A DNA stretch of 64,000 nucleotides, taken from the NCBI GenBank assembly GCA_020536535.1, contig JAHLWZ010000804.1:70234-134233 (forward strand). Direction: 5' to 3'. The position numbers were made by a program, and so were the translations under genes. How positions within the stretch are numbered: position 1 is the first letter of the stretch; each line of letters begins with the position of its first letter. The stretch is from Pelomyxa schiedti. Lineage: Eukaryota; Protista; Evosea. Shown piece after piece: positions 5,844 through 64,000 of the stretch. The notes under the pieces were generated by a model that did no database searches, was not told the DNA's origin, and saw nothing but the letters and a program-made list of their open reading frames with translations.

Positions 5844-8800
5844 TTACTGGAAATTGAATGAACCGTGCTTGTCAAACACAGCCAATACTGTGCCCCCATC
5901 CTCCGTCAGAATAACTACACGGCCCGTGTTGCCGTGCTTGTGAGGGGACCCACCTCTGCCGGAGGGCATGGCCCAGTGTGGGTCGCTTTCGTTGGCCGCG
6001 TCTACTACGCACGTGGTTGCATTGTGGCACACTGGCTGGTGAAGCCCAACAACGCTGCCGCTGCCCCCGCCGCCCCCGCCGCCGCACGCGATGTGGGAGT
6101 ACGCGTTCTGGCCGCCGCCGCCGCCGCCAAACCGCCCGCTGTTGGCGTGGTGCTGGTTGTCTCCACCATAGCCCCCAGTGTCACTTGTCCCCCACGCATC
6201 ACTGTTTGACGCCGCGCCGCCGCCGCCGCCGTTGCCATTGACCCCTGGGCCTCCATTGTGGGCGCAGTCCGCACCGGCGCCGCCGGAGCCAAGGTTCCCG
6301 ACGTAGGCCCCGCCGCCGCCGCCTCCACCAGCAAAGAAGGAGCCGCCTCCGCCGCCTCCGCCACCTCCACCTGCAGCCGCCAGTAGCTGATCCGTGCCCG
6401 TCTCGTGGATGAATGATGCTCCTCCACCTCCTCCTGCAGCATTCCGAGAACCTCCACTGCCACCACCTCCTCTCACACCGGATCCACCAGGGCTTTTGCT
6501 ATCTTCACCTGAGCCTCCACCACCCCCGTCACACCCTCCTTTTCCTTTCACACTGCCGCCTTCGCCAGAGCCACCATCCTCCCAGCAGCCACCATATCCT
6601 CCCACCGTTACTCTGAGTGATGAACCAGGCTTGACACTGACAACTCCAGATACAAAGCCGCCGCCTCCACCACAGGTATCCAAGCCATATCCTGAACCAC
6701 CACCAGCTCCCCACATCTTGACCATCAACTTCCTTGGCCCATTCTTTGTTGTGGTAGGTATTTGACGTCCTCTACTGGGTTCTACATGTAGATGAATTTA
6801 CAGGTTTAGAATTGAAATGCACATTACCTTCACTAGATGTACTATTGGGAGTCCTTAGTATTGATGCATAGGTGGGAGCCTGTGCAGGTTTCTGCTTTGG
6901 GGAGGCTGTTGAGTTTTGGCTTGGCGAAAACGGTTTAACTGTTGTGGGTGGTGATGGGGAAGGAGGAGCAATTGTTGAGGTGATGGAGACTGAAGGAGGG
7001 GATAGCTGTGGTTGCGTTAGAACCGTTGGTAAGGGAAGTGGCGGTGACAAAGGCACAAGAGGTGGACTTTCAGGCACAGGTATTGGTATTGGTATCGCCG
7101 CGGTAGTTTGCAGTTGGGTAGGCATTTGGTTGCTGGGACTGGTCAGTGTTGGAGAAAGGGGGTGCCGTACCCCCAAAGTTTGGTTCATGTTGCTGATGTT
7201 GATTATTGGTGGCAAAGTGACAGGGGGAAGTGGCCGTCTTTCATCTGTAACATCAAGTCAAATAAAAGAAAGATTGTATGAAGGAACAAACCAATGGTTT
7301 TTATCGCTATTGAGTCCAGGAAAGAAAAAACGAGTGGAGGGTTCTCCAAATAATACTGAAATTGCGGATAGTCTCCTTCCCTATGTGTTAAGCCTTCAAC
7401 AGAGAATGCCTAATTGAAAAGGGAAGTGAGATTATTAGGTTCCAACAAAATAGAAATGTACTTTCAAAATGTTGTTACATTCTGTGAGCGGCTCTGACCA
7501 GTCTCTGGAAACATAGGACTTGTTGGAGAGAATAGCTTCGAATCTCAATGCCATTGCCTGCAGCTGTACAGAGACTTTCTCAAGGTGACAATAACGTTCT
7601 TGGATGGAAAGATCTAGCTCAGTGATTAGGATAGAAGAAAGAGAAGAAAGTGCACTGAAAAACCATTGTAGGCTTTGAGTTGTTCTATCTGCCGCATTAA
7701 TTCGGTGCATTTCTCAGATGCTGCTCTTCGAATCTCCTCCATAGTGTTGGTCAACTCCATGCTTAATGCTTCAAGTGCCTTCATGGAAACAAAGTATGAC
7801 AAGCTTAGAAAGAAACCAAGTAATGACGTATAAACCTGATTTTGGTGAATAACTTCCTTTTGCAGGTCATTTCTGGCGTTCGATAGCAATACCGCTCGTG
7901 ACTTGAGTTCCTGAATCCCATTCAATAGCTCTTTTCTACACTGCTCTCCCCATTCATTGATGAGAACAACTTCGTGGCCTTTGTGAGACCCAAAGTTTGC
8001 ACACTCCAAACAGACTAAACATTTGCATGATCGGCAAAACAGCTTAAGTTGCTCTCGATGTTCCACACATCTTGGAGCATATGATAGAGGCGGTGCTGTT
8101 ACAGTCCCGCCGTCAATTCGGATCCGCTGGTGGGCACCAAGGGGACCTCGGTGGATGGTGTTATCGCACTTGGAACACATAACTGCCCCACAATCAGCAC
8201 ACTGAACAGTGGCTACTTCCAGACAATCCATTGAGCAAATGATTTTTTTCGGACCAGCTGGCAGAGGTTAAGAAAAAGGTTAAAAAGAGGAAGGGATACT
8301 TCTTTTATATTTTTCCACGAGAGCAGCCATCACTTGGTTCGGGGGAAGAGCTTCTTTCGTAGTCCTCGATTTGCTGATGAACATAACACTAGAGCAAGTG
8401 AGGCACACAATGGCATCGAACTCCTTATGTGTTTCCTGCTGGAAACAACCGATGTCAGCGAAATACCGTACAAACAAGACACTCCTACCAGATTAGTATT
8501 AGCGCTCGCGACCAGCGAGTAGTAGGAGCGCAAGTTGTCGGCGCAGTCGATGCACATTGTGTGGCCGCAGTTGAGCAGCACCGGCTTGTTGTACATCCTG
8601 CCGCACAACTTGCACACCACCTCATCCTCCTCACTCTGCCCCCCAATCACGCTCGCGGATTTAGCGGCTCCGCTGTTGCCGCCGCCCCCGCCGATCACGT
8701 TGCCGTTCACGTTCGCGTTCGCGGTGGCGTTGGCGTTTGCGTTTGCGTTGACGTTCACGTTCACGTTCGCGCCGCCGCCGCTTGCTGCCGATCCCGATGC

Positions 8801-8995
8801 AGTAGTCGTCGTAGCGGCGGCGTTGGCGGCGGCCGACGACGGCGACGCGGACGTCGTGGTCCCCGGCGCCCCGGTTTTCGCGGGTGGCGCGTCGGACACG
8901 CCGAACGAGTCGGACGGCGATGTGCCGATTGCGGGGGTGGAAGGAGGGGTCGTAGATGCCGACGTCGTGTGCTTGTTGCGGTTCCTCTTGCTCAT
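5844..8995 (-). CDS. TRIM/RBCC-type E3 ligase: RING, B-box1, B-box2, coiled coil, Pro/Ser linker, C-terminal glycine-rich (ALK/LTK GRD-like) domain
   Basis: RING CKLCGRMYNKPVLLNCGHTMCIDC; B-box CADCGAVMCSKCDNTIH...H; B-box CVEHREQLKLFCRSCKCLVCLEC...HKGH. Exons join in frame through GT-AG introns (ILK/AFSVEG...KTI/DERRPLPP...SSE/EPSRGRQ...KLMVKMWGAGGGSG). The last exon has many GGGGG runs (WGAGGGSG...AAAGGGGGGG...GGGGGSG). Confidence 0.8.
8258..8299 (-). other. Candidate U12-type (minor spliceosome) GT-AG intron, 42 nt, phase 1, in the TRIM gene
   Basis: Donor GTATCCCTT; TTCTTAAC lies 9 nt before the CAG end. The intron contains an in-frame stop, and removing it joins KYKR-T-GPKKIICSMDC. Confidence 0.55.
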
Positions 8996-9348: not shown

Positions 9349-10495
9349 ATGTGTGCCCTGCGGTGGGGCTCACTCCCACTGCCCCTAAGGCTGTTTCTCG
9401 TCCCCCTCGTGCTCCTGACCGCCCTCGACGCACGGTATCGTCTGGTCCAACACCGAGGCCTGCTTTTGGCCCTGAGGGCTTGGGCCAACGGCAAACACCC
9501 CGTTGGGTAAGGACCTTCCCATAATTGTGTTGGACCTTGTGCATGTTGTTTCTTTCTTATGGCATGCCACGTGATGGCTTGGTTTTTTTTTAACAAACAA
9601 AGCGCAATCACGCTTATGAGCTCGTTTTTACAGATATACTCGGTTTATCAATGGGCTGGCTAAGATATTTGGACAAAGAGTCATTGCAGCTGCTACTGAT
9701 CGTTACCACGGAAAAGTACTTACTCCTGAACATGCAAGAGTGTGCTTCTTTTTCTTTCCCCATCTTGAATTCCGAGCCCTATCTCACTTTACATAGACAA
9801 TGGTTACTTGGACAAAGTGCTGCATCGAACGCAGTGACCTTGGCGAACGTGTTCTACCTTTCAGTGTAGCCAGGGACCTAGTGATGCGGGGACCTCCGGA
9901 GATTGCGCTTGTTAATTGCGAGTGCAGAGAATTAAAGAAAGTTCATTGCGAGCCTCTGGAGGTAGATAGTTTCCTTACCGCGCTTATTAAAAGTAATGAC
10001 TACCTCAAGGTTTGCATGGTAATGGGCAGAGAGCTTTTAGATCGCTTTCCCTCGGCGAAGCGCATAACAATACCTGAGGCTATTGAAGTTCTCAAGGCAG
10101 CACACAACAACGGGAACGTGCACACAGCGTGGTTCGCGGAACTACACGAAAACTCAATGTTCGCAATATGCAACTGCTGCAAGTGCTGCTGCAGCGGAAT
10201 TGAGACCATGAGGAGGTACGGCTTCACAGCCGGCAATATGGTGTCATCAGGCTACAGCTCCCGCCGCAAAGAAGGAAGCACATGCGTAGGCTGCGGCGCA
10301 TGCGAGAAGCTCTGCGCCTTTGATGCTATACACCTCAAGCTGGCAGCGGAACAAGGTGGCCGGCCACAGGCTTATGTAGATACTGACAAGTGCCTTGGCT
10401 GTGGGGTGTGTGTTGCCAAGTGCCCAAAGAAGTGCCTGGAGCTCACAAGAGACCCTTCAAAACCCGCTCCTCTTGACCTGAATGAGCTATTCTGA
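9349..10495 (+). CDS. Bacterial-type 4Fe-4S dicluster (ferredoxin-domain) protein with ICNCCxCCC motif; start uncertain
   Basis: YHGKVL motif (9705-9725), NCECR, FAICNCCKCCCSG, and two CxxCxxCxxxC motifs (CVGCGACEKLC, CLGCGVCVAKCP). Interrupted by short GT-AG introns. Confidence 0.8.
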
Positions 10496-10691
10496 GAACA
10501 AAACTTTGACTCATTAACTGCAAACCAACCTCACAACCCCGTTGTCCCACGACAGAATAACCTACCGAAGTCACCCACGCAGGCAATTTTCCAATCAACT
10601 TGTCCAAGCGAGTAGCCCAACTTGACTACCTCGCTTCTTGCGTCATTTTTCCTTCTCATAATTTCCGAACAATAAACGGAACAAACACCGA

Positions 10692-13313
10692 ATGAGCTGG
10701 CTGATCAACAGGTCGTGGCGGTCCAAGACCCCACCAACAGCAGCAGACGCCAACACACCAAAAGCAGCAGCACTAGCGGCAGCGACGACGAGCCAAACGC
10801 CGGCATCTACAACACCACCGAGCGCGACTCGCAGGGCCACAGGGACAGCCGTCGCTAGCAATGCTACTACTCCACCAACAACCAGAGCAACACCTACCGT
10901 CCCAGATAGGACATCCACCTCCTCTTCCTCGGCCTCGGCCTCCGCCTCCTCCACGTCTACGTCACGGTCAACGTCCACATCCACATCCACATCCACATCC
11001 ACATCCACATCCACCTCGACGTCGACGTCGACGTCCACGTCCACATCAACGCCAGCAACGGCTCTGAGGTCCTCAATAACTAAACGCGACGCCAGAGCCA
11101 AAGCCAGGACCAAGCCGGACCGCGACGAAGACGAGGCGCGCTACAAGGTGTACTGGAAGACCCAAGGGTTCTTCGTGATATGCACCGCGTGCGGGGCCGC
11201 CGGGCGCCCGCTGGTCAGCCGCGCCAAGGTGCGCACGAGGTGCCGGAGCTGCGGCGAGGAGGTGGCGTGCACGGACAAGGACCCCGCGTGCTGGCGCGAC
11301 CTCAAGATCGGGGTGCCGGGGCACTGCCTGGGCCCCAGGTGCGACCCGCGGGGGACTCCCAAGGGCCAGCCTACCAAAATAGACTTTTGGACAAAGTGTG
11401 GCAAGTGCGGGGATCAGGGTGCCGTGTTTTCTAGGGTGCTGTTCGACAACACTGCCAGAAAGACTTGTGGGATCTGTCTGGAGGTTAAACCTGTATGTGT
11501 CCCTCCCTCCATACTTTTCTTGAAGATTTGAGATATTTCAAGCAATTATATAACCCAAAAACAAAGGAAATGCTATTCTTTCCGCACCCTTGCACCCATT
11601 GCATATGCCCAGAGTGCTTTATACGCTACTGGACACACAAGGTGTCTTCACGGCGGCTGCCATGGAATCCAGAGAAAAAAAAGCATGGCATTACCTGCCC
11701 ATGTTGTCGTATGATCACTTAAAATAAATTTAACACAGTCCCAGGTGGCTGCCAAGTCTTTATACACGATTTGCATCTGCTGAAACTAGTTGGTGCTGAC
11801 CTCTATAATAAAATAAAAGATATCGGTGTTGGCAGGGAAAGTCTTGCAGTAAGGCCCCTTAAACTCTGAATCCTATATTTAACCAACAAACAATCTAGGA
11901 CATCGGATGTAATGGTATTTATTGTGCAAATGAAAGGTGTGAATATGCAGCAAAGGCGTTCCTGCCAGCATCTCTTGACCAGTCATTCTCCCAGTGTCCT
12001 GGTTGCAAGGTAGTATCAATGAAGTTCCAATTTTCTACGAATCTCAAAGCCAAAATAGCAACACACTTGCGTGGTCTGCTTGAGTCTTGCTGGTAGATGC
12101 ACATGCACGGGATTGGATCCAATGCGAACTGCTCCATATTTCATTCAACTCGGAGGTGCAGCCACGCATAACCTCCAGTTACAAACCTAATTCACATTAA
12201 GAGCATTTCTGCAAGAGCGTTAAAATACCCGAGCGAGATCGAACTATACCGGTCTTTTTCCAACGTGGATCTAAGCTTCTTGTTTATGTATCAGAATAAA
12301 TGCCATGGCGATTTTATAATGGGTACCAGGTACACCCAGATGATACAATTTTGGAAGTGAAATGTCTTCTTGAAAAACAGCACAATATTGAGTGCTTCAA
12401 GCAAAGGTTTGTCTACATTGGAAATGATGTTCCTCTCGATAAAACAATCGGGTCACTTGCAATGGCAAGCAATACTGTCGTACATTTAGTTTTCTATGCA
12501 TTAACGGAGAATCCCTACATGTGTGTAGCTTGTAATTACCTCGTTTCTGACCTTTTCCCTCCCAGGAAAACTCCCGCCGAGCCTTCCTCTGTTGTGGCCA
12601 ATACAACGAATACTACCAGTGCTTCAACAGCCGTGCCTGCTCAACTACCTTCTGTCCACACCCTTGCACCAACAGAAGTGCCAACTGAGAGGCAAGACCA
12701 AGCTTCGAAAAATCATGATGCTCCTCCTGTACCAAATCAAAGCCCACCTCCCCAACCTCCTCCAATGCCATCCCCTGCAGCTGTTCCACCACCCAGTGAG
12801 ACGGCTCATCAACCCACAGAAACAACAGTGGCACAGGCAACACCCCAGCTTCAAACCTCCCCCTCCACTGTACCACCTAAACAAGTTACTTCTGACCAAC
12901 AAGCAACCCCTGCTGTAACTGACCAAGCAGTGGGCCCAGTAGAGAAGCGGTGCCCCCAGCCCTCATGCCGTGCACTGGTCATTAAATTTAAGTAAGCCTG
13001 TAACAACTCATTGCATCTTCCACTCAATTAATATGCTCAATCAGACATCACGGCTGCCACCATGTCAAATGCCCCTCTTGCAACTATGCCTTTTGGTAAG
13101 TATTCCTGTCCTCATACACTGTTATTACCGCCAAGCACTAAAACCATTCCCAAATCAACAACCAGTTATTCGTGCCTGGGCCCACACCCTTGTAGCAAGT
13201 GCTCGTACCTCTGTAACAAAAAGTGTGACTGTGCTCCTTGTGATGCGTGCAAACTTGGAAAACCATGCCCGGACTGCAAAGGATGTGATGTATGTGAGCC
13301 AAGAGACGAGTAA
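10692..13313 (+). CDS. Parkin-like RBR E3 ubiquitin ligase: Ser/Thr-rich N-terminus, RING0, RING1, IBR, internal ubiquitin-like domain, Pro/Thr linker, RING2(Rcat), Cys-rich tail
   Basis: RING0-like FVICTAC...KVRTRCRSC...PACWRDL...GHCLGPRC...FWTKC. RING1 CGIC...CTHCICPECF...TCP..GCQVFIHDLHLLKLVG. IBR CANERC...CPGCK/QHTCVVC...CTC. Ubl VHPDDTILEVKCLLEKQHNIECFKQRFVYIG...TVVHLV. Rcat CPQPSCRALVIKFKHHGCHHVKCPSCNYAFCYSC. Intron positions are corroborated by the paralog at 61864-64000. Confidence 0.8.
10950..11051 (+). repeat. Coding (TCCACA/TCGACG)n hexamer repeat encoding (Ser-Thr)n
   Basis: tccacatccacatcc...tcgacgtcgacg; translates STSTSTST in ORF 10692-11531. Confidence 0.9.
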
Positions 13314-13738
13314 AAAAAAACCATTCTGTTGTATTGCACAAGAAAGTCTTTTGTTGGCTCATCCGCACTCAAACCCAAACTCCCATGTGTCATCCTAGTC
13401 AAGACAGCCTCAGAAAAGAGTGAATGCAATTTTCGGTGGAATTCTCAAGCATTTTTGGCAGGTACTTTTTTTGATGGAGTGGTCCGTGCATCCCTTGAAT
13501 TGGGCTGGGCACAGGCAAACTGTTTTTAACTCAGTTGAAGAGGTACCCTTCCTGTAGGCCACTTCTCACTTACCTTTGAACCAATCCTCGATTTTTCGTG
13601 CACGAAACCCGGATTCTACCCCAAGGGTAGCTTTCCCCAAAACAAAAATATCAAGACCAGGACTGGGGTACCCAGTCACTGGGATAAGTTACTTTTTACA
13701 CAAAACAGCGAGGGTCTTTGCACATGTGGGGGGAGGCT

Positions 13739-16361
13739 CTAGTGTACACTGTTGCTAGAATCGAGGCTTGGTGATTCTGGCGGTGGGCTCAGGAGGTGTG
13801 TCCTGGGTGTGGCGTCGTTGGCTCTGTTGGGTAGTTTGGTGTGTAATGTTGGGTGCTTCGTCCGGCTGCGTTTGGAGTGATGTGCGGCTGTGGTGCTGTG
13901 GGTGTGGATTGCTAACGAGGGTGTTGGTGCGGAGAACTGGAATGGAATTGGGTGATGCGGAGATGAAGGTAGTACACCCGCACCGGGGTGTGGAAGGGCG
14001 GGATCGTCGTAGCTGTGTGTGGGAACACTTGCCGGCGATGTATCTTGGCTGGGATCCAGCTCCAAACCCTCGGGTAGGGTTACTCCCTCGCTGTTCTGAA
14101 AAATGTTCTCCTGATCCAGTGTGGCCTCTTGTGATGCATCACCTGAATCAGAGACGGTTGGTGTTGATGAAGATTCCCCGGTGGACGTGGCAAGGTTAAT
14201 GTCGGAACTGTTCTGTGACACCGGATCTGCGTTTATGGAAGCCTCGGTTGCCGTGACACCAGCTTCTTCACTTTGGAGGCGGATTTTTCTGGTGCGAACA
14301 AATCCAATCACCACAAACGAGACGAGGAAAATGACACAAAATGCTATCAGCAAGGTAGATACAACCAAGGCAACAGTGAATAAAATCTTTTTGGTAGAGA
14401 TCTCACTGGAAGTCTCCGAAACCAATGCTGTGCGGAATTAGACTGAAAACTCGATGTAATGACAACATACAATAATCGCAGTTAGCAACAGAGGCGAAGC
14501 CGATTCGGCTATTAGCTCGATCAAACAGTGTAGTGAAAGGAGACAAAAACACGTCACCCAGCACTGTTGTGTTGCTGCCACTACTGTGTATGCCAAAGTA
14601 CCAGCATGGAGTTCCGCGGTTGTCCTACAGAATTTAAGAAAGCAAGAGGATGCAAAAGCCGCATACCCGCGTTGAAACAAAGTAAATGTCCGGCTGTAAA
14701 ACAAGGGATATTTCTGCATCGGGATCACTTGCATCTGGCATATAGAAGACAAAGTTGGGGTACTCGTCCAAAGTTCGGTCACTGAAGTACCAGCAAGCAT
14801 CAGGATCAAATATGTTTGTTTTCCCACAAACTCCTGTCAAGCTGAATGTGGAAGAACAATAATTGCTTTGCAAAGTTTGGACAACACTCTGAAACCAGCT
14901 TAAGAACGAGGAGAGTGATAAGTTCAGAAACACTCACATTGTAAAGTGCGGTAGCTAACAGGATCAAACTCGTGCCACTGTCTACGATTGCATCAAGTGT
15001 CTGGGAAGTTATGGCAAATTCACCTATCCCGATCCTGACCAACTCTACGTGGTAATAATCTTGTTTAACTGGAGAACCTAGTTAGCGTATGTAAAGCTTT
15101 CAACTACACACCTATTGGTGTTAACGCGAATTGACCGGTGTAAGTGCCAGTTGAGCCACCAAGAACAAGCAAACCACCCTACAATGTGTCAGTAAAAGGA
15201 AATGAGACAATGATATGTGAAGTATACCAGAGGGCTGAGGCAAATAGAAAATTCATCTTTGAGCCCTGCCTCTACCAATGTTTCAAATACACCAGGAACG
15301 TCAGAAACGGATATCGATTGGTATGCAAGGCCTAGGATGCCGTCAACCTGGCCAAAAGTTAGTCTATTTTTATACTAAGTGCGGGGAAACCTCACTGGAC
15401 GCGAAATTTCCCTTTTCAGAAAGCGCTACACCCAGGCTCACCTCCGTAGGAACAAAGTTGCCTTGGAAAAGTTATTCACTTACACTGCACTGGAGAAACG
15501 TACTTATTCTCAAGGAGTCATTGACTACATAAGCATTAACAGATGAGGCGTCACCATAGGATACATGAATCTGGCATGCCTCTTGTCCCTCCAAAGAAAC
15601 ACAACTGTGAAACTCATTAATGGAAGAAGCAAGAAAATGTAATTCACTTACCCAGAGTTACAAGTGTCGGTGCAGGGCCACAAGGATGACGTATTGGAGG
15701 CAGTGTAATTGTAAAGGTTTGTTGTGTGTGGACACGCTACCAAAATATTAGCATGTCAGAGAAAACCTATTCTCTACAAACCTTTTCCAGAGGACGTTAC
15801 GCAATCTGTGCTAGGTAGTAGAAGGTTGGCACTGCCGGTGTCTATTTGTACACGGAAAGACTGTGAAGGAGTACCAACCTGATACAGTTAGGAAGAAAAA
15901 CACCTGGGAAAGGAGAAAGAAATGCTCACAGATACTTCTGCGAAGTACTCGCCAATGACCCCCACACCGCCACCCAGTAGACAGAAGAACAACGTGCGCT
16001 GCTCATCAGGAGGGACTGCTGGCACTGAACCACTGTATTCAACTCCTTTGACTCCATCATCCTCATCACCATCACCATGCGGATGTCCCCTGTCCTTTAC
16101 ATCGGCGCTACTAGGTGGTGGTCCCATCTTCTTTGCATCAGGGACTGGTGGGGATCCAAAATAAAGGCGGTAGTCGGCTTCTCCATAGCCTTGAATTCCC
16201 GTGTTCTCCACATTGCCACGGATGAGCTTGATTATAACAGCGTCACGTGATGTCACAATACTGGCACACGCCAACCACACCACAGTGATAAAAAAGGGCT
16301 GTCCACATCCGCATGTACGGAAAAAGCTGCGCGCGACGTCGTTCCTGGAGATCCGGTGCAT
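13739..16361 (-). CDS. Pepsin-family (A1) aspartic protease, type I membrane-anchored (BACE/plasmepsin-like)
   Basis: Hydrophobic N-terminal segment (FFITVVWLACASIVTS); catalytic motifs QIDTGSAN (about 15825-15850) and AIVDSGTS (about 14970-14995); C-terminal TM KKILFTVALVVSTLLIAFCVIFLVSFVVIGFV followed by a Ser/Pro-rich tail. Confidence 0.85.
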
Positions 16362-60770: not shown

Positions 60771-61863
60771 TGAAGCAAATCAGAATCATAGGGGAAGAAG
60801 GAAACCAGGCACCTGTGTGATCCTTCATGGAGACAAGATAGTACAATTTATCGTAGTCGCGTGTATTGATTGTCCCAAATCCTTGTCTGCAGCACTTTCA
60901 CTGGAGGTGCAGCCTCCTCCCTTTGGTACTATTCATTTGGATCAGTCGGACACACTCGGTGTGCTTACTCAAGCCGCAGTACATAGTGAAGATTGAAAGA
61001 AACCATATATCACCAAGGGTTTGGTGGGCAATGCAGGAGGAATCTGTTGGCAAAAGGAGACAATAAAGGTAAAAACCTGGGGTTATGTTATGTGTAGTTG
61101 AGCCACACACTCTCCTGCCAGACCATATGGTGAGTATACCTTGGTGGCTGTCATCTCAGCAGCTGTTGCAAGTCTACGACCTTTTACGCAAAGTAACTCT
61201 GGGATGAAGAAGAAAGAAGAAGTCACATACCAGTCACTGACCTCCTGAAATGCTAGATCACAAACCAGAAAAAAATAAAACAAAATTAATCAAAAAAGAG
61301 AAAGGAAGAAATGAGAGAAAAGGAGAGAAAGGAAAGGAAAAAGGAAAGCCAGAAAACAGAAAAAGGGAAAAAGGGGGAAAAAAAAAGGAGAAGGACATAC
61401 CAGAATTGCCACTGGAATCCACACACTGCTTGTCAGGTTAGTTGTTAAGGGAGGAGTTAGTTGAGGACACACCAAGAGAGCCACCAAAAAGGAAAGGAGC
61501 CCCAGAAAAGAAAAGGAAAAAGGGAAAACGAAAAAGAGGAGGAAAAAAACTGAATACAACAACCCCAACCAACAACAGAAGCACCTGCGACACCCTAAAC
61601 ACTGGAAATAGCAACACACCAGTGACACCCATACAACAGAAACAACAGCAAGGCTGCCCGCTGTTTGCATTGCTGGTGTCCATGTTGCCACACCCGTCAG
61701 CGCAGCTGTTGTCACACCCGTCACCACACCGTCGTCACGCAAATGTTATCGTCGCTCAGTCTCGGCGGTCCTGGGCGATGATAAGGAAAATGACACCGTT
61801 CCGGTCTGTTGTTTATTTTATTCAGCCAATTTTTCCAATTATGAAGGAAAAAGAGGGTTGCAC

Positions 61864-64000
61864 TCAAGAGCATTTTCTAACAACAAAAGAAGCTCTGACT
61901 TGGTGGTGATATTCCTTCTGTTCATCGAGTGCTGTTAACTGATCTCCAGGTTGGTGAGTGTAATTGAGGCGGCCCCATAATAAACGGTCCAGCACACAGG
62001 AAAGATGTGCACATAACTGGTCCAGTGTGTTGTAGTAAAACCGTGGAAGGCCCCTCTCAAGTGGATACCACCCGAAATTATTATCGGACACTGCCACTGC
62101 GTGAGGTGGGCCATACTGAGGATCATAGAGCCAAACTGTAGGACTTTCAGGCCATCGCCTTGCAATTCTGGTACCGTATGGAACGAACGGTTTCGCAGGG
62201 AATGCCTGTGGAGTTGAATTGTTGTTTGAGAGGGAGAATTTGAGAAAAGGACTTGCTTGCTGGTGGGCCTCAGGTGAGGCCACTACTGTGTAAACAGGAG
62301 CTCCAATACTGGAACAGCGAACGAAGCAGGATGGCACTGTCGCTGTTCTTAGAGAAGTTACACTATGCTGATGTTCCAATAAACCATGAAACCACCTTGT
62401 TTTTTGGTTGTAAGTCCAACATAATACAATCATACATACACTTTTCGCCAGTCCTCAACTACCTCCTGCAATTGAGTTAGAAAGATTGTAACAAATATGG
62501 GAACAGACCTGGTCCCAATAAGGACCATCTGGGCTTGGGTGCATTAGGTACTCACAGAGGGTTGTCCAGTCTTTCTGCTTTATCTTGCCACCATCCATAG
62601 AAACTATTATCATTGAGTGCTGTAGATAGGTATTGCGAAAAGAAAGACAGACCTAGCTCACATAACCATTTCCTGGTAGATACAGGAAGAATCTCTTTTT
62701 GGTAAAACTTATCCCAGGATCCAATGGAAGCGGTTTTAAACAGTGCAGACCAAGTACTAGTGGCCCACTGCTGCACAGGCGAAATTTGATCCGATGGGGA
62801 TACAGTTGTCAAGTGTGTGGGTTCACACACGTTGCACCCATCACAAAATTTGCACGGTTTATTGGGCTTACATTCGTCACATGGGGGACAGGTGCATGAC
62901 TCGTTGCACCACAGCGGGCACCTGGAACAGGGGTGCCGGCCCCGGCAGTTGTAGCTGCAATTGATTTAGTTGTTTGCTGAACTTGTCGTTATACCAGAAA
63001 TGAAAGCCGCAAGAGGGGCAGCCACCATTGGGGCCGATATGATGGCACCCATGGTACCTTTTTTTGTGTTTGGTTGGAAAAAAAAAAAGGAGGTTGCCTG
63101 TACTTGAAATGCACAATTGGAGTGTGACAGCGAGGACACGTCTTTCCCGAAAGAGAAGGTGATAGGGTGGCCTCTGGTCCAGGTGTAGTTTGTCTGGTCG
63201 GAAGAGTCGTTTGTAACGTAATTACCGTGGCAATGGTGGAAGCACTGTATATTATAATATTTATAAGGACCGTGCTGCACAGAGAAGAAAGATTACGGTT
63301 TGCTTTGGGACACTGAAGGGTCCGAATCAGCAAGAGGGATCGAATTATAATGGCAAAGCTCTTCATGAGCAGAAATTTTCCTCCCAGGAAATATCAGTTT
63401 TTGTTTGAAACATGGAATATTTGTCTGCTTTTCAATTAGGCATTTCAGTATTGTAGGAGTGTCATCATCATGAATCTAAAATACAGTGTAAAGAGAAATC
63501 AGAGTAAAAAGGGAGATACGTAAACGGTAATATTTCGGGGGCCTCTTATGCTGAGTGGGTGAGAGCGAAACCGCACTGGTATGGTCATGGTTCGACACCA
63601 GTGACCTACATATTCTAGGTAAAAATATCCTCCGCTTGTTCCTGGCAAACTACGCAAGTGTATTTCTTTTATTCCCCATAGTAAGGCCTCGGTATTAGGA
63701 ATTGGATATTGCGTACCTTACATGCAGGACATTGAACAAAATTGCGATCAAAAGTACTGGGGATAATGAATCTAGAGCACGTTGGAACAGCGCAATTGAT
63801 ACCACATAGGCCCATATTCTACTTCTGGGTAATAGGTTGTGAAATGGAAGAAAGGTTTACAGATGCAGATTTGGAGGCTAAATCCATGAAGATATTGTAG
63901 TACTTAGGTCCCAGAAGTTGAAGTATCTGGATATCATGCACAAAAACTTGGCAGCCAGCTTTTATTACGTTGCTTATTATCGAAAGTTATTGCGAAGGGC
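61864..64000 (-). pseudogene. Paralog of the Parkin-like RBR gene (RING1 end, IBR, Ubl, Rcat, Cys tail) with an extra C-terminal SH2-like domain; frameshifted in the IBR exon; 5' part outside window
   Basis: AGCQVFVHDIQILQLLG; CPACK/KYTCVVC; IHDDDT..LKCLIEKQTNIPCFKQ; CPRCHTPIVHFKYHGCHHI..GCPSCGFHFCYNC..HPCSRC...CDECK..KPC..CDGCNVCEP; WFHGLL...CFVRCSS...YTV...YNTLDQL. The frame breaks at about 63625-63640. Confidence 0.7.

Follow-up and report, generated by a model that had tools for sequence, protein, structure and literature searches.

An architectural variant of Parkin outside animals with its ubiquitin-like domain placed between IBR and Rcat

Does a ubiquitin ligase of the Parkin kind occur outside animals, and can it carry its ubiquitin-like domain (Ubl) elsewhere than at the N-terminus? 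The question is raised by a gene on the forward strand of a 64,000-nucleotide stretch of contig JAHLWZ010000804.1 (the window, i.e., the whole stretch of DNA that was analysed), which had been interpreted from the letters alone (hereafter the sequence-only reading) as a Parkin-like RBR ligase with a relocated Ubl. Among RBRs, RING0 is said to occur in Parkin only (PMC3940038), the parkin subfamily is described as animal-specific (Marin 2010, PMC2904391), and Entamoeba is reported to be devoid of both Parkin and PINK1 (PMC9796589); our literature searches brought up no account of a protein resembling Parkin from Pelomyxa, Amoebozoa or other protists. According to the results given below, the protein possesses the core features of Parkin and lacks the N-terminal Ubl, the REP and the C-terminal plug; it represents the Parkin kind outside animals in a variant architecture and is not an orthodox Parkin. 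Judging from its predicted domains and residues, we hold it to be fairly probable, if well short of certain, that the gene encodes a catalytically competent RBR ligase of this kind in an anaerobic amoeba-like protist, probably an archamoebid related to Pelomyxa, and that its internal Ubl would be switched by phosphorylation.

As judged from sequence and fold searches, the RING0-RING1-IBR core of the protein is homologous to that of Parkin and to that of no other solved RBR. The RING0 piece (121 amino acids), used as a phmmer query against PDB sequences, had as its significant matches six parkin sequences and no others (E values of 5e-5 to 8e-3). Six matches at E≤0.001 were obtained with the RING0 query in a HMMER search over 1.84 billion representative proteins; four of them were repetitive proteins with many matched stretches, and the two matched over a single stretch were P0006 and P0005. 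P0006 is a canonical parkin, its domains following one another conventionally as Ubl, zf-RING_12, zf-RING_14, IBR and IBR_2; P0005, from the anaerobic amoeba Pelomyxa schiedti (GCA_020536535.1), is annotated as 'hypothetical protein Pelo_3794' and has 460 amino acids. The AlphaFold2 (AF2) model of the RING0 piece, with a predicted local distance difference test score (pLDDT) of 74.9, gave in Foldseek 32 top matches, all of them parkin (E 4e-5 to 1e-2), followed by matches with E>1. All eight zinc ligands of RING0 (C164, C167, C184, C187, C212, C217, C236 and C239) are kept within the motif FFVIC..C...KVRTRC..C...DPACW...GHC....C...DFWTKCGKC, so that the Parkin-type RING0 proposed by the sequence-only reading is borne out by the PDB and Foldseek matches as well as by the ligands. 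A hidden Markov model (HMM) made from 65 animal parkins only placed residues 136-403, as a single collinear stretch of 105.7 bits, on profile positions 114-357; the Ubl (residues 427-525) was aligned to profile positions 14-112 with 19.5 bits, and the Rcat columns yielded 16.2 bits. The rearranged domain order is thus directly visible in the order of the matches to this profile.

Pelo_3794 (JAHLWZ010000291.1, L001, positions 6001-7711) is the only close relative found in public data. It consists of a low-complexity N-terminus, RING0, RING1, IBR and Ubl, in the same order as in the window protein, the identity between the two being 36% overall and 64% in RING1; a 30-residue insert separates its RING0 from its RING1, and its gene neighbours differ from those of the window gene. 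Pelo_3794 exceeds the gathering scores of both Pfam parkin families. Its matches among PDB sequences with E≤1e-5 are parkins, every one, and those with E≤1 are all parkins except for one antibody light chain (E 0.82), no other RBR appearing at the latter threshold. The AF2 model of Pelo_3794 comprises a confident RING0-RING1-IBR core and a Ubl with pLDDT <50; in Foldseek, this core matched parkin at E 5e-14 to 2e-10, then HOIL-1 at 3e-3, and HOIP, ARIH2, RNF216 and HHARI at E 1e-2 or weaker. In a tree of RING0-IBR cores, which was composed of parkins and the amoebal pair with no outgroup and no other RBR subfamilies, the window protein and Pelo_3794 formed a clade (Shimodaira-Hasegawa-like approximate likelihood ratio test value, SH-aLRT, 99) outside all sampled animal parkins, the stem from the pair to the animal parkins being 2.9 changes per site long. 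Consequently, in this tree without outgroup there is no sign of recent transfer from an animal. The restriction of the parkin subfamily to animals is not what was found for this gene: its nearest relative comes from an amoebozoan, P. schiedti, and its introns are only 42-74 nucleotides long.

The gene is expressed as a single spliced mRNA. RNA contigs from four single-cell transcriptome runs (X1-X4, labelled 'protist metagenome') were aligned to positions 10300-13800, each piece differing from the window by 0 or 1 letter. They outline exons 1-5 at 10692-11492, 11567-11702, 11745-11848, 11899-12009 and 12059-12155, and exons 6-10 at 12202-12287, 12330-12520, 12566-12991, 13045-13095 and 13166-13313. 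The nine introns between them are all of the GT-AG type, and each was seen in the RNA contigs as a joint (11492>11567, 11702>11745, 11848>11899, 12009>12059, 12155>12202, 12287>12330, 12520>12566, 12991>13045 and 13095>13166). With exon 2 beginning at 11567 the protein reads EVKP, then, across the joint, EMLFFPHPCTH; a small exon of its own, 12202-12287, encodes the opening two strands of the Ubl, and the 45-nucleotide intron 12521-12565 takes out 'CVACNYLVSDLFPPR'. The spliced frame of 2151 nucleotides (716 codons) has no internal stop and runs from the ATG at 10692 to the TAA at 13311-13313, in agreement with the gene span given by the sequence-only reading. A contig of run X2, 1412 nucleotides long and extending from 11358 to ~13240, crosses eight of the nine joints, which places the end of RING0, RING1, IBR, Ubl, linker and Rcat on one spliced RNA. 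The case that the sequence-only reading had named against itself, namely that the exons of Ubl and Rcat belong to a separate transcript, fails at this point, as the spliced contigs join all of them.

The same data bear on the explanation that the gene model is an artefact, two genes having been read as one, or that the gene is an unexpressed or decaying pseudogene. Such an explanation could lean on the ATG at 12300, which comes straight after a stop and suggests a second start, on the Pelo_3794 model, which finishes just past the Ubl, and on a frame break in a further paralog at the end of the window (see below). However, contigs from three runs contain the joints 12155>12202 and 12287>12330, which put the ATG at 12300 within intron 6, a single contig carries RING0 through Rcat, and the spliced frame is open over its whole length; we regard the artefact or pseudogene as hardly credible. 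The RNA of the upstream gene is finished by ~10629, which is consistent with the N-terminus chosen here. The introns within 11493-13165 are richer in AT than the exons, and their donors vary from GTAAGT to GTTGTC and GTGCAG. One contig of run X1 has an additional T after position 12254 in exon 6 (depth 2.3 of 14.9), which is probably an error of assembly or sequencing at a run of T.

Reading along the spliced protein, the domains follow in the order of low-complexity N-terminus, RING0, RING1, IBR, Ubl, Pro/Thr linker, Rcat with GCHH, and a tail with nine Cys (Table 1). Every domain from RING0 to the GCHH Rcat is therefore present in the order claimed by the sequence-only reading; the Cys-rich tail is present too, with nine counted Cys instead of 'about 10'. 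The N-terminal Ubl, which is defining for the Parkin subfamily, is not present: neither a Ubl nor a Pfam domain was detected in residues 1-150, and the sole Ubl (residues 430-503) comes after the IBR and before the Rcat. The low-complexity N-terminus includes an in-frame (TCCACG)x16 repeat at 10950-11044, encoding an (ST)n run, near which the RNA contigs break. In RING0, the position of the Parkin ligand H215 is occupied by Cys, as it is in 15/65 animal parkins. The ligands of RING1 are C259/C262/C276/H278/C281/C284/C311/C315, and those of the IBR (residues 356-400) are C356, C361, C380, C383, C388, C391, C398 and C400, with a C-x-C ending that occurs also in 11 of the 65 animal parkins.

The tether between IBR and Rcat contains a complete ubiquitin fold. 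The Ubl, tethered ~30 residues downstream of the IBR, was aligned by phmmer to residues 17-71 of ubiquitin without gaps; V473 falls on I44 of ubiquitin, and T494 falls, again without gaps, on Ser65 of both ubiquitin and Parkin. The motif T494-V-V-H497-L-V reproduces the T-V-V-H-L-V of the sequence-only reading, whose assignment of Thr to the Ser65-equivalent position is likewise upheld; the C-terminal Gly-Gly is absent. The subsequent linker of ~130 residues (P 22%, T 15%, A 12%, Q 10%) looks flexible and gave no domain match in Pfam over residues 505-633. The Rcat has the zinc ligands C638, C643, C660, C663, C668, C671, C677 and C680 and the motif G654-C655-H656-H657 within HHGCHHVKC, in which C655 (13055-13057) and H657 (13061-13063) are aligned pairwise with the catalytic C431 and H433 of vertebrate parkin. 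The nine Cys of the tail (residues 684-711) are spaced as C-x3-C-x-C-x2-C-x2-C-x5-C-x2-C-x2-C-x2-C; the tail found no match in Pfam or among PDB sequences and probably binds two additional zinc ions.

With animal Parkin (PRKN; 4K7D, 5C1Z, 6GLC, 6DJW, 5CAW; human, Bactrocera, Pediculus) the protein shares the same eight-ligand RING0 ahead of RING1, at ~25-35% identity in RING0, the RING1-IBR-Rcat order and the catalytic Cys-x-His. Functional residues were mapped by hmmalign to the parkin profile, and the columns were counted in the 65 animal parkins (Table 1). Shared are the K161/R163/K211 patch and P180/W183 on RING0, Y312 on the RING1 helix, where H302 and R305 correspond to H323 and K326, and two features of the Ubl, namely His at position 68 and a residue with a hydroxyl group at position 65; Thr at position 65 is not unusual, being found in 18/65 animal parkins. 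K161/R163/K211 constitute the RING0 patch that binds the phosphorylated Ubl and thereby displaces RING2, and K151/H302/R305 form the phospho-ubiquitin pocket (PMC11368401). As far as the alignment goes, the positions of the pocket are retained in H323 and K326, and K151 is replaced by T165. The differences from animal Parkin are as pronounced: the Ubl of Parkin is N-terminal, and the window protein has it between IBR and Rcat; Parkin possesses the REP helix (Trp403) and the ACT element, both missing here; Parkin ends in Trp462-Phe463, and the window protein in a conserved nine-Cys tail. To these are added a 150-residue low-complexity N-terminus, the linker of ~130 residues between Ubl and Rcat, and a non-animal host.

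In Parkin, RING0 masks the Rcat cysteine (PMC3940038). By the reading that we prefer, the Rcat cysteine of the window protein would also be occluded by RING0 at rest, and the Ubl would dock on RING1/IBR, where it could stand in for the missing REP as a block of the tether. Upon phosphorylation of T494 by a kinase, the phospho-Ubl would bind the conserved basic patch of RING0; alternatively, it might act as a built-in phospho-ubiquitin and occupy the H323/K326 pocket. The Rcat would thereby be displaced and, free to swing on the long linker, could accept ubiquitin from the E2 on RING1 and pass it on. The Cys-rich tail may replace the Trp-Phe plug or hold substrates.

A number of observations weigh against this reading, some of them concerning its foundation and others the switch. 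As to the foundation, the Pfam check that had been proposed with the sequence-only reading came out divided. In Pfam scans, done for this protein on single exons, the best families were zf-RING_12 for RING0 (E 0.0012) and parkin's zf-RING_14 for RING1 (E 5.6e-4), and ubiquitin was detected on the partial Ubl exon with E 1.6e-6, but the parkin families stayed under their gathering scores (19.4 vs 25; 20.7 vs 26.6). The fold matches depend partly on the sequence matches, because the alignments used by AF2 were mostly of parkins. The RNA contigs do not cover 10651-11235, and the first 180 residues accordingly rest on the open frame. The RING1 exon alone, a short query, found no meaningful match in PDB. 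The low Pfam scores, this empty RING1 search and the long stem to the animal parkins would be in line with convergence or a mosaic, in which a zinc module resembling RING0 and a Ubl were independently added to an RBR from a different subfamily, no shared pathway being implied. Nevertheless, RING0, RING1 and IBR make up one collinear block on the parkin profile; Pelo_3794 passes both gathering scores and has, at the thresholds given above, parkins and no other RBR as its PDB matches; its Foldseek values for parkin and for other RBRs lie seven orders of magnitude apart; and the Parkin-specific residues that are not zinc ligands (P180, W183, K161, R163, K211 and Y312) are kept. Considering these facts, convergence or a mosaic appears very unlikely to us.

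As to the switch, nothing in the profile alignment falls on Trp403 of the REP (present in 44/65 animal parkins), the tether holding the Ubl and the Pro/Thr linker, and the C-terminal Trp462 and Phe463 (each in 63/65) are absent from a protein that ends in its nine-Cys tail; as these residues are missing, autoinhibition may differ from that of Parkin or be absent. In Pelo_3794, the Ser65 position is occupied by Ala and that of H302 by Ser, and the forward frames of the 2.7 kb lying 3' of it show no Rcat motif. Since Pelo_3794 lacks Thr/Ser65, His302 and Rcat, the phospho-switch is not conserved across the small family. The gene model of Pelo_3794 ends directly after the Ubl, at the place where intron 7 of the window gene begins, and in the region read up to 10400 the next gene is a SIR2-family model; Pelo_3794 is either a truncated, non-catalytic form or an incomplete gene model.

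Several of these points would fit a Parkin-derived core devoid of a phospho-switch and of a PINK1-type kinase, in which the internal Ubl is a constitutive module: a built-in allosteric 'ubiquitin' holding the RING1-IBR helix active, a handle for the proteasome or a shuttle, or an inhibitor replacing the REP. The basic patch would then serve the packing of RING0 against Rcat or bind some other acidic ligand. In some RBRs (HOIP, HOIL-1 and RNF216), ubiquitin that carries no phosphate serves as the activator at the RING1-IBR site, which makes a constitutive module conceivable; the absence of the REP and of the Trp-Phe plug agrees with it, as does the equal similarity of the Ubl to ubiquitin, NEDD8, RUB1 and the Parkin Ubl (see below), and so does Pelo_3794, which has lost the residues at Ser65 and H302, yet retains the basic patch as K124/R126/R178. 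What speaks for the switch is that Thr65, His68, the K/R/K of RING0 and the H/K of the helix are retained together in the window protein, these positions being near-invariant phosphate readers in animal parkins (PMC11368401). We rate the core without a switch as unlikely, if a serious contender, and the phospho-switched ligase remains the reading that we prefer.

How did the Ubl come to lie in the tether? Its scores were 19.8 bits to the Parkin Ubl, ~19-20 to ubiquitin, 19.2 to NEDD8 and 24.2 to RUB1. As the Ubl is no closer to that of Parkin than to ubiquitin or NEDD8, a moved and a separately gained Ubl are indistinguishable. The circular rearrangement put forward by the sequence-only reading has to be abandoned in any case, the order R0-R1-IBR-Ubl-Rcat corresponding to the transposition of one domain or to an independent gain of the Ubl.

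That this order does not arise from the assembly is indicated by a second Parkin-like paralog on the reverse strand, which is cut by the end of the window (Table 1). From the RING1 helix onwards it repeats the layout of the window protein, with IBR, Ubl, Rcat (HGCHH) and Cys-rich tail; being cut, it is without RING0 and most of RING1. Its tail is 60% identical over 45 amino acids to that of the window protein. Since the paralog shares it, the arrangement IBR-Ubl-Rcat-tail characterises the family and is not to be put down to an error of assembly; the order RING0-RING1-IBR-Ubl is found in Pelo_3794 as well. In the Ubl of the paralog there is a frame break between '...ELCHYNSIPLADSD' and 'PKQTVIFLL', and no GT-AG intron joins the two pieces. 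An SH2 domain in the open reading frame 61867-62454, downstream of the paralog, was not confirmed by Pfam at E≤0.1.

Among other RBR ligases, HOIL-1/RBCK1 comes nearest: it too has a Ubl and a zinc module ahead of RING1, the second zinc site of Parkin RING0 resembles the NZF of HOIL-1 (PMC3940038), and among the fold matches it ranks directly behind parkin; its atlas feature score is 0.88. It differs in its N-terminal Ubl and in having an NZF instead of a two-zinc RING0; for the Pelo_3794 core, its Foldseek E value of 3e-3 stands against 5e-14 for parkin, and it gave no PDB sequence match at E≤1. The Ariadne RBRs (HHARI and TRIAD1/ARIH2) have in common with the proposed mechanism an Rcat cysteine masked in cis by an accessory domain and a release that depends on a modifier; in them, however, the mask is a C-terminal helical Ariadne domain, activation is achieved by neddylated cullins, and there is no Ubl. 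Their fold matches were weak (E 1e-2 to 0.1).

Wider searches for the family gave the following picture. Word-index searches of 5.8 billion proteins, made with the whole Pelo_3794 and then with its RING1 region, returned only the query, from which it follows that the window protein, the paralogs and transcript-derived fragments are absent from this set at 253-805 amino acids. Two family peptide patterns and a degenerate DNA pattern for RLPWNP[DE]KK brought only chance matches in JGI metagenomes. A 1374-nucleotide contig of JGI sample 3300019138 encodes a parkin-like protein of 422 amino acids (P0083/L005) in an intronless, AT-rich gene; the protein scored 121 bits on the parkin-only profile and ends like parkin, with 'EWCxxC...HW', and Pfam detects no RING0 in it. 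With a score of 0.90, a protein-atlas search placed a Mucoromycota cluster of 'IBR domain-containing' proteins near the amoebal protein. Outside animals, ligases resembling Parkin may be more widespread than the literature states.

Table 1. Features of the Parkin-like gene and its paralog in the window, and counterparts of functional Parkin residues
Feature	Position in window	Strand	Residues or content in the window protein	Basis, or occurrence in 65 animal parkins
Whole coding region	10692..13313	+	10 exons, 716 amino acids	RNA joints and spliced translation
Low-complexity N-terminal region, Thr/Ser/Ala-rich	10692..11141	+	1-150	Composition
Parkin-type RING0	11154..11411	+	~155-240	PDB phmmer, Pfam zf-RING_12, AF2/Foldseek
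RING1, C3HC4, across introns 1 and 2	11466..11752	+	259-315	Pfam zf-RING_14, parkin HMM alignment
RING1-IBR helix	11753..11848	+	316-347	hmmalign to parkin profile
IBR/BRcat, across intron 4	11908..12106	+	351-400	Parkin HMM alignment
Internal Ubl, across intron 6	12240..12503	+	~430-503	Pfam ubiquitin, phmmer, parkin HMM
Pro/Thr/Ala/Gln-rich linker, across intron 7	12507..12938	+	505-633 (~130 residues)	Composition
Rcat/RING2, across introns 8 and 9	12951..13202	+	638-680	Parkin HMM, pairwise alignment, Pfam IBR_1 (exon-9 region)
C-terminal Cys-rich tail	13212..13313	+	684-716	Direct reading
Second Parkin-like paralog, cut by window end	61860..64000	-		tblastn of spliced protein, six-frame reading, Pfam ubiquitin E 1e-4
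Parkin K161	11226-11228		K179	65/65
Parkin R163	11232-11234		R181	65/65
Parkin K211	11394-11396		K235	63 K, 2 R
Parkin W183			W201	64/65
Parkin H302			H323	57/65
Parkin R305			K326	41 R, 8 K
Parkin Y312			Y333	63/65
Parkin C431			C655	64/65
Parkin H433			H657	65/65
Parkin Ubl position 65	12474-12476		T494	46 S, 18 T
Parkin H68			H497	53/65
Parkin K151			T165	K in 20/65

The expression of a Parkin core with its phosphate-reading residues in an amoeba-like anaerobe implies that this core predates animals or has moved between lineages, and it leads one to ask which task such a ligase performs where classical mitochondria are absent. The role in organelle quality control put forward by the sequence-only reading, and likewise a dependence on PINK1, are hypotheses; the lack of aerobic mitochondria, which that reading took as probable, has indirect support in the origin of the sole homolog from the anaerobic P. 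schiedti. A far-reaching view, which we consider doubtful, would be that phospho-ubiquitin signalling of the Parkin type is older than animals, and that anaerobic amoebae keep a small ligase family with the phosphorylatable Ubl in the tether, which would be driven by an expanded set of PINK1-like kinases and would tag hydrogenosome-like organelles, endosymbionts or something else. Were it true, the protein would be a natural 're-wired' Parkin, showing which parts of the autoinhibition are essential. In human Parkin, the tether between IBR and Rcat contains the REP brake and restricts the access of the phospho-Ubl to RING0, and it is in this tether that the Ubl lies here; the untethering of the Parkin linker has been studied (PMC11368401), and a natural protein with the Ubl in this tether offers a ready test of the elements needed for Parkin autoinhibition.

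In the neighbourhood of the gene, a 231-amino-acid open reading frame at 9800-10495 on the forward strand has a C-terminal domain of the 4Fe-4S dicluster ferredoxin type and is transcribed, the RNA contigs reaching ~10629. Further upstream, at 7629-8995 on the reverse strand, lie open reading frames with two B-box zinc fingers (7629-8231) and a C3HC4 RING (8333-8995), which look like exons of a gene for a TRIM-like RING-B-box ligase.

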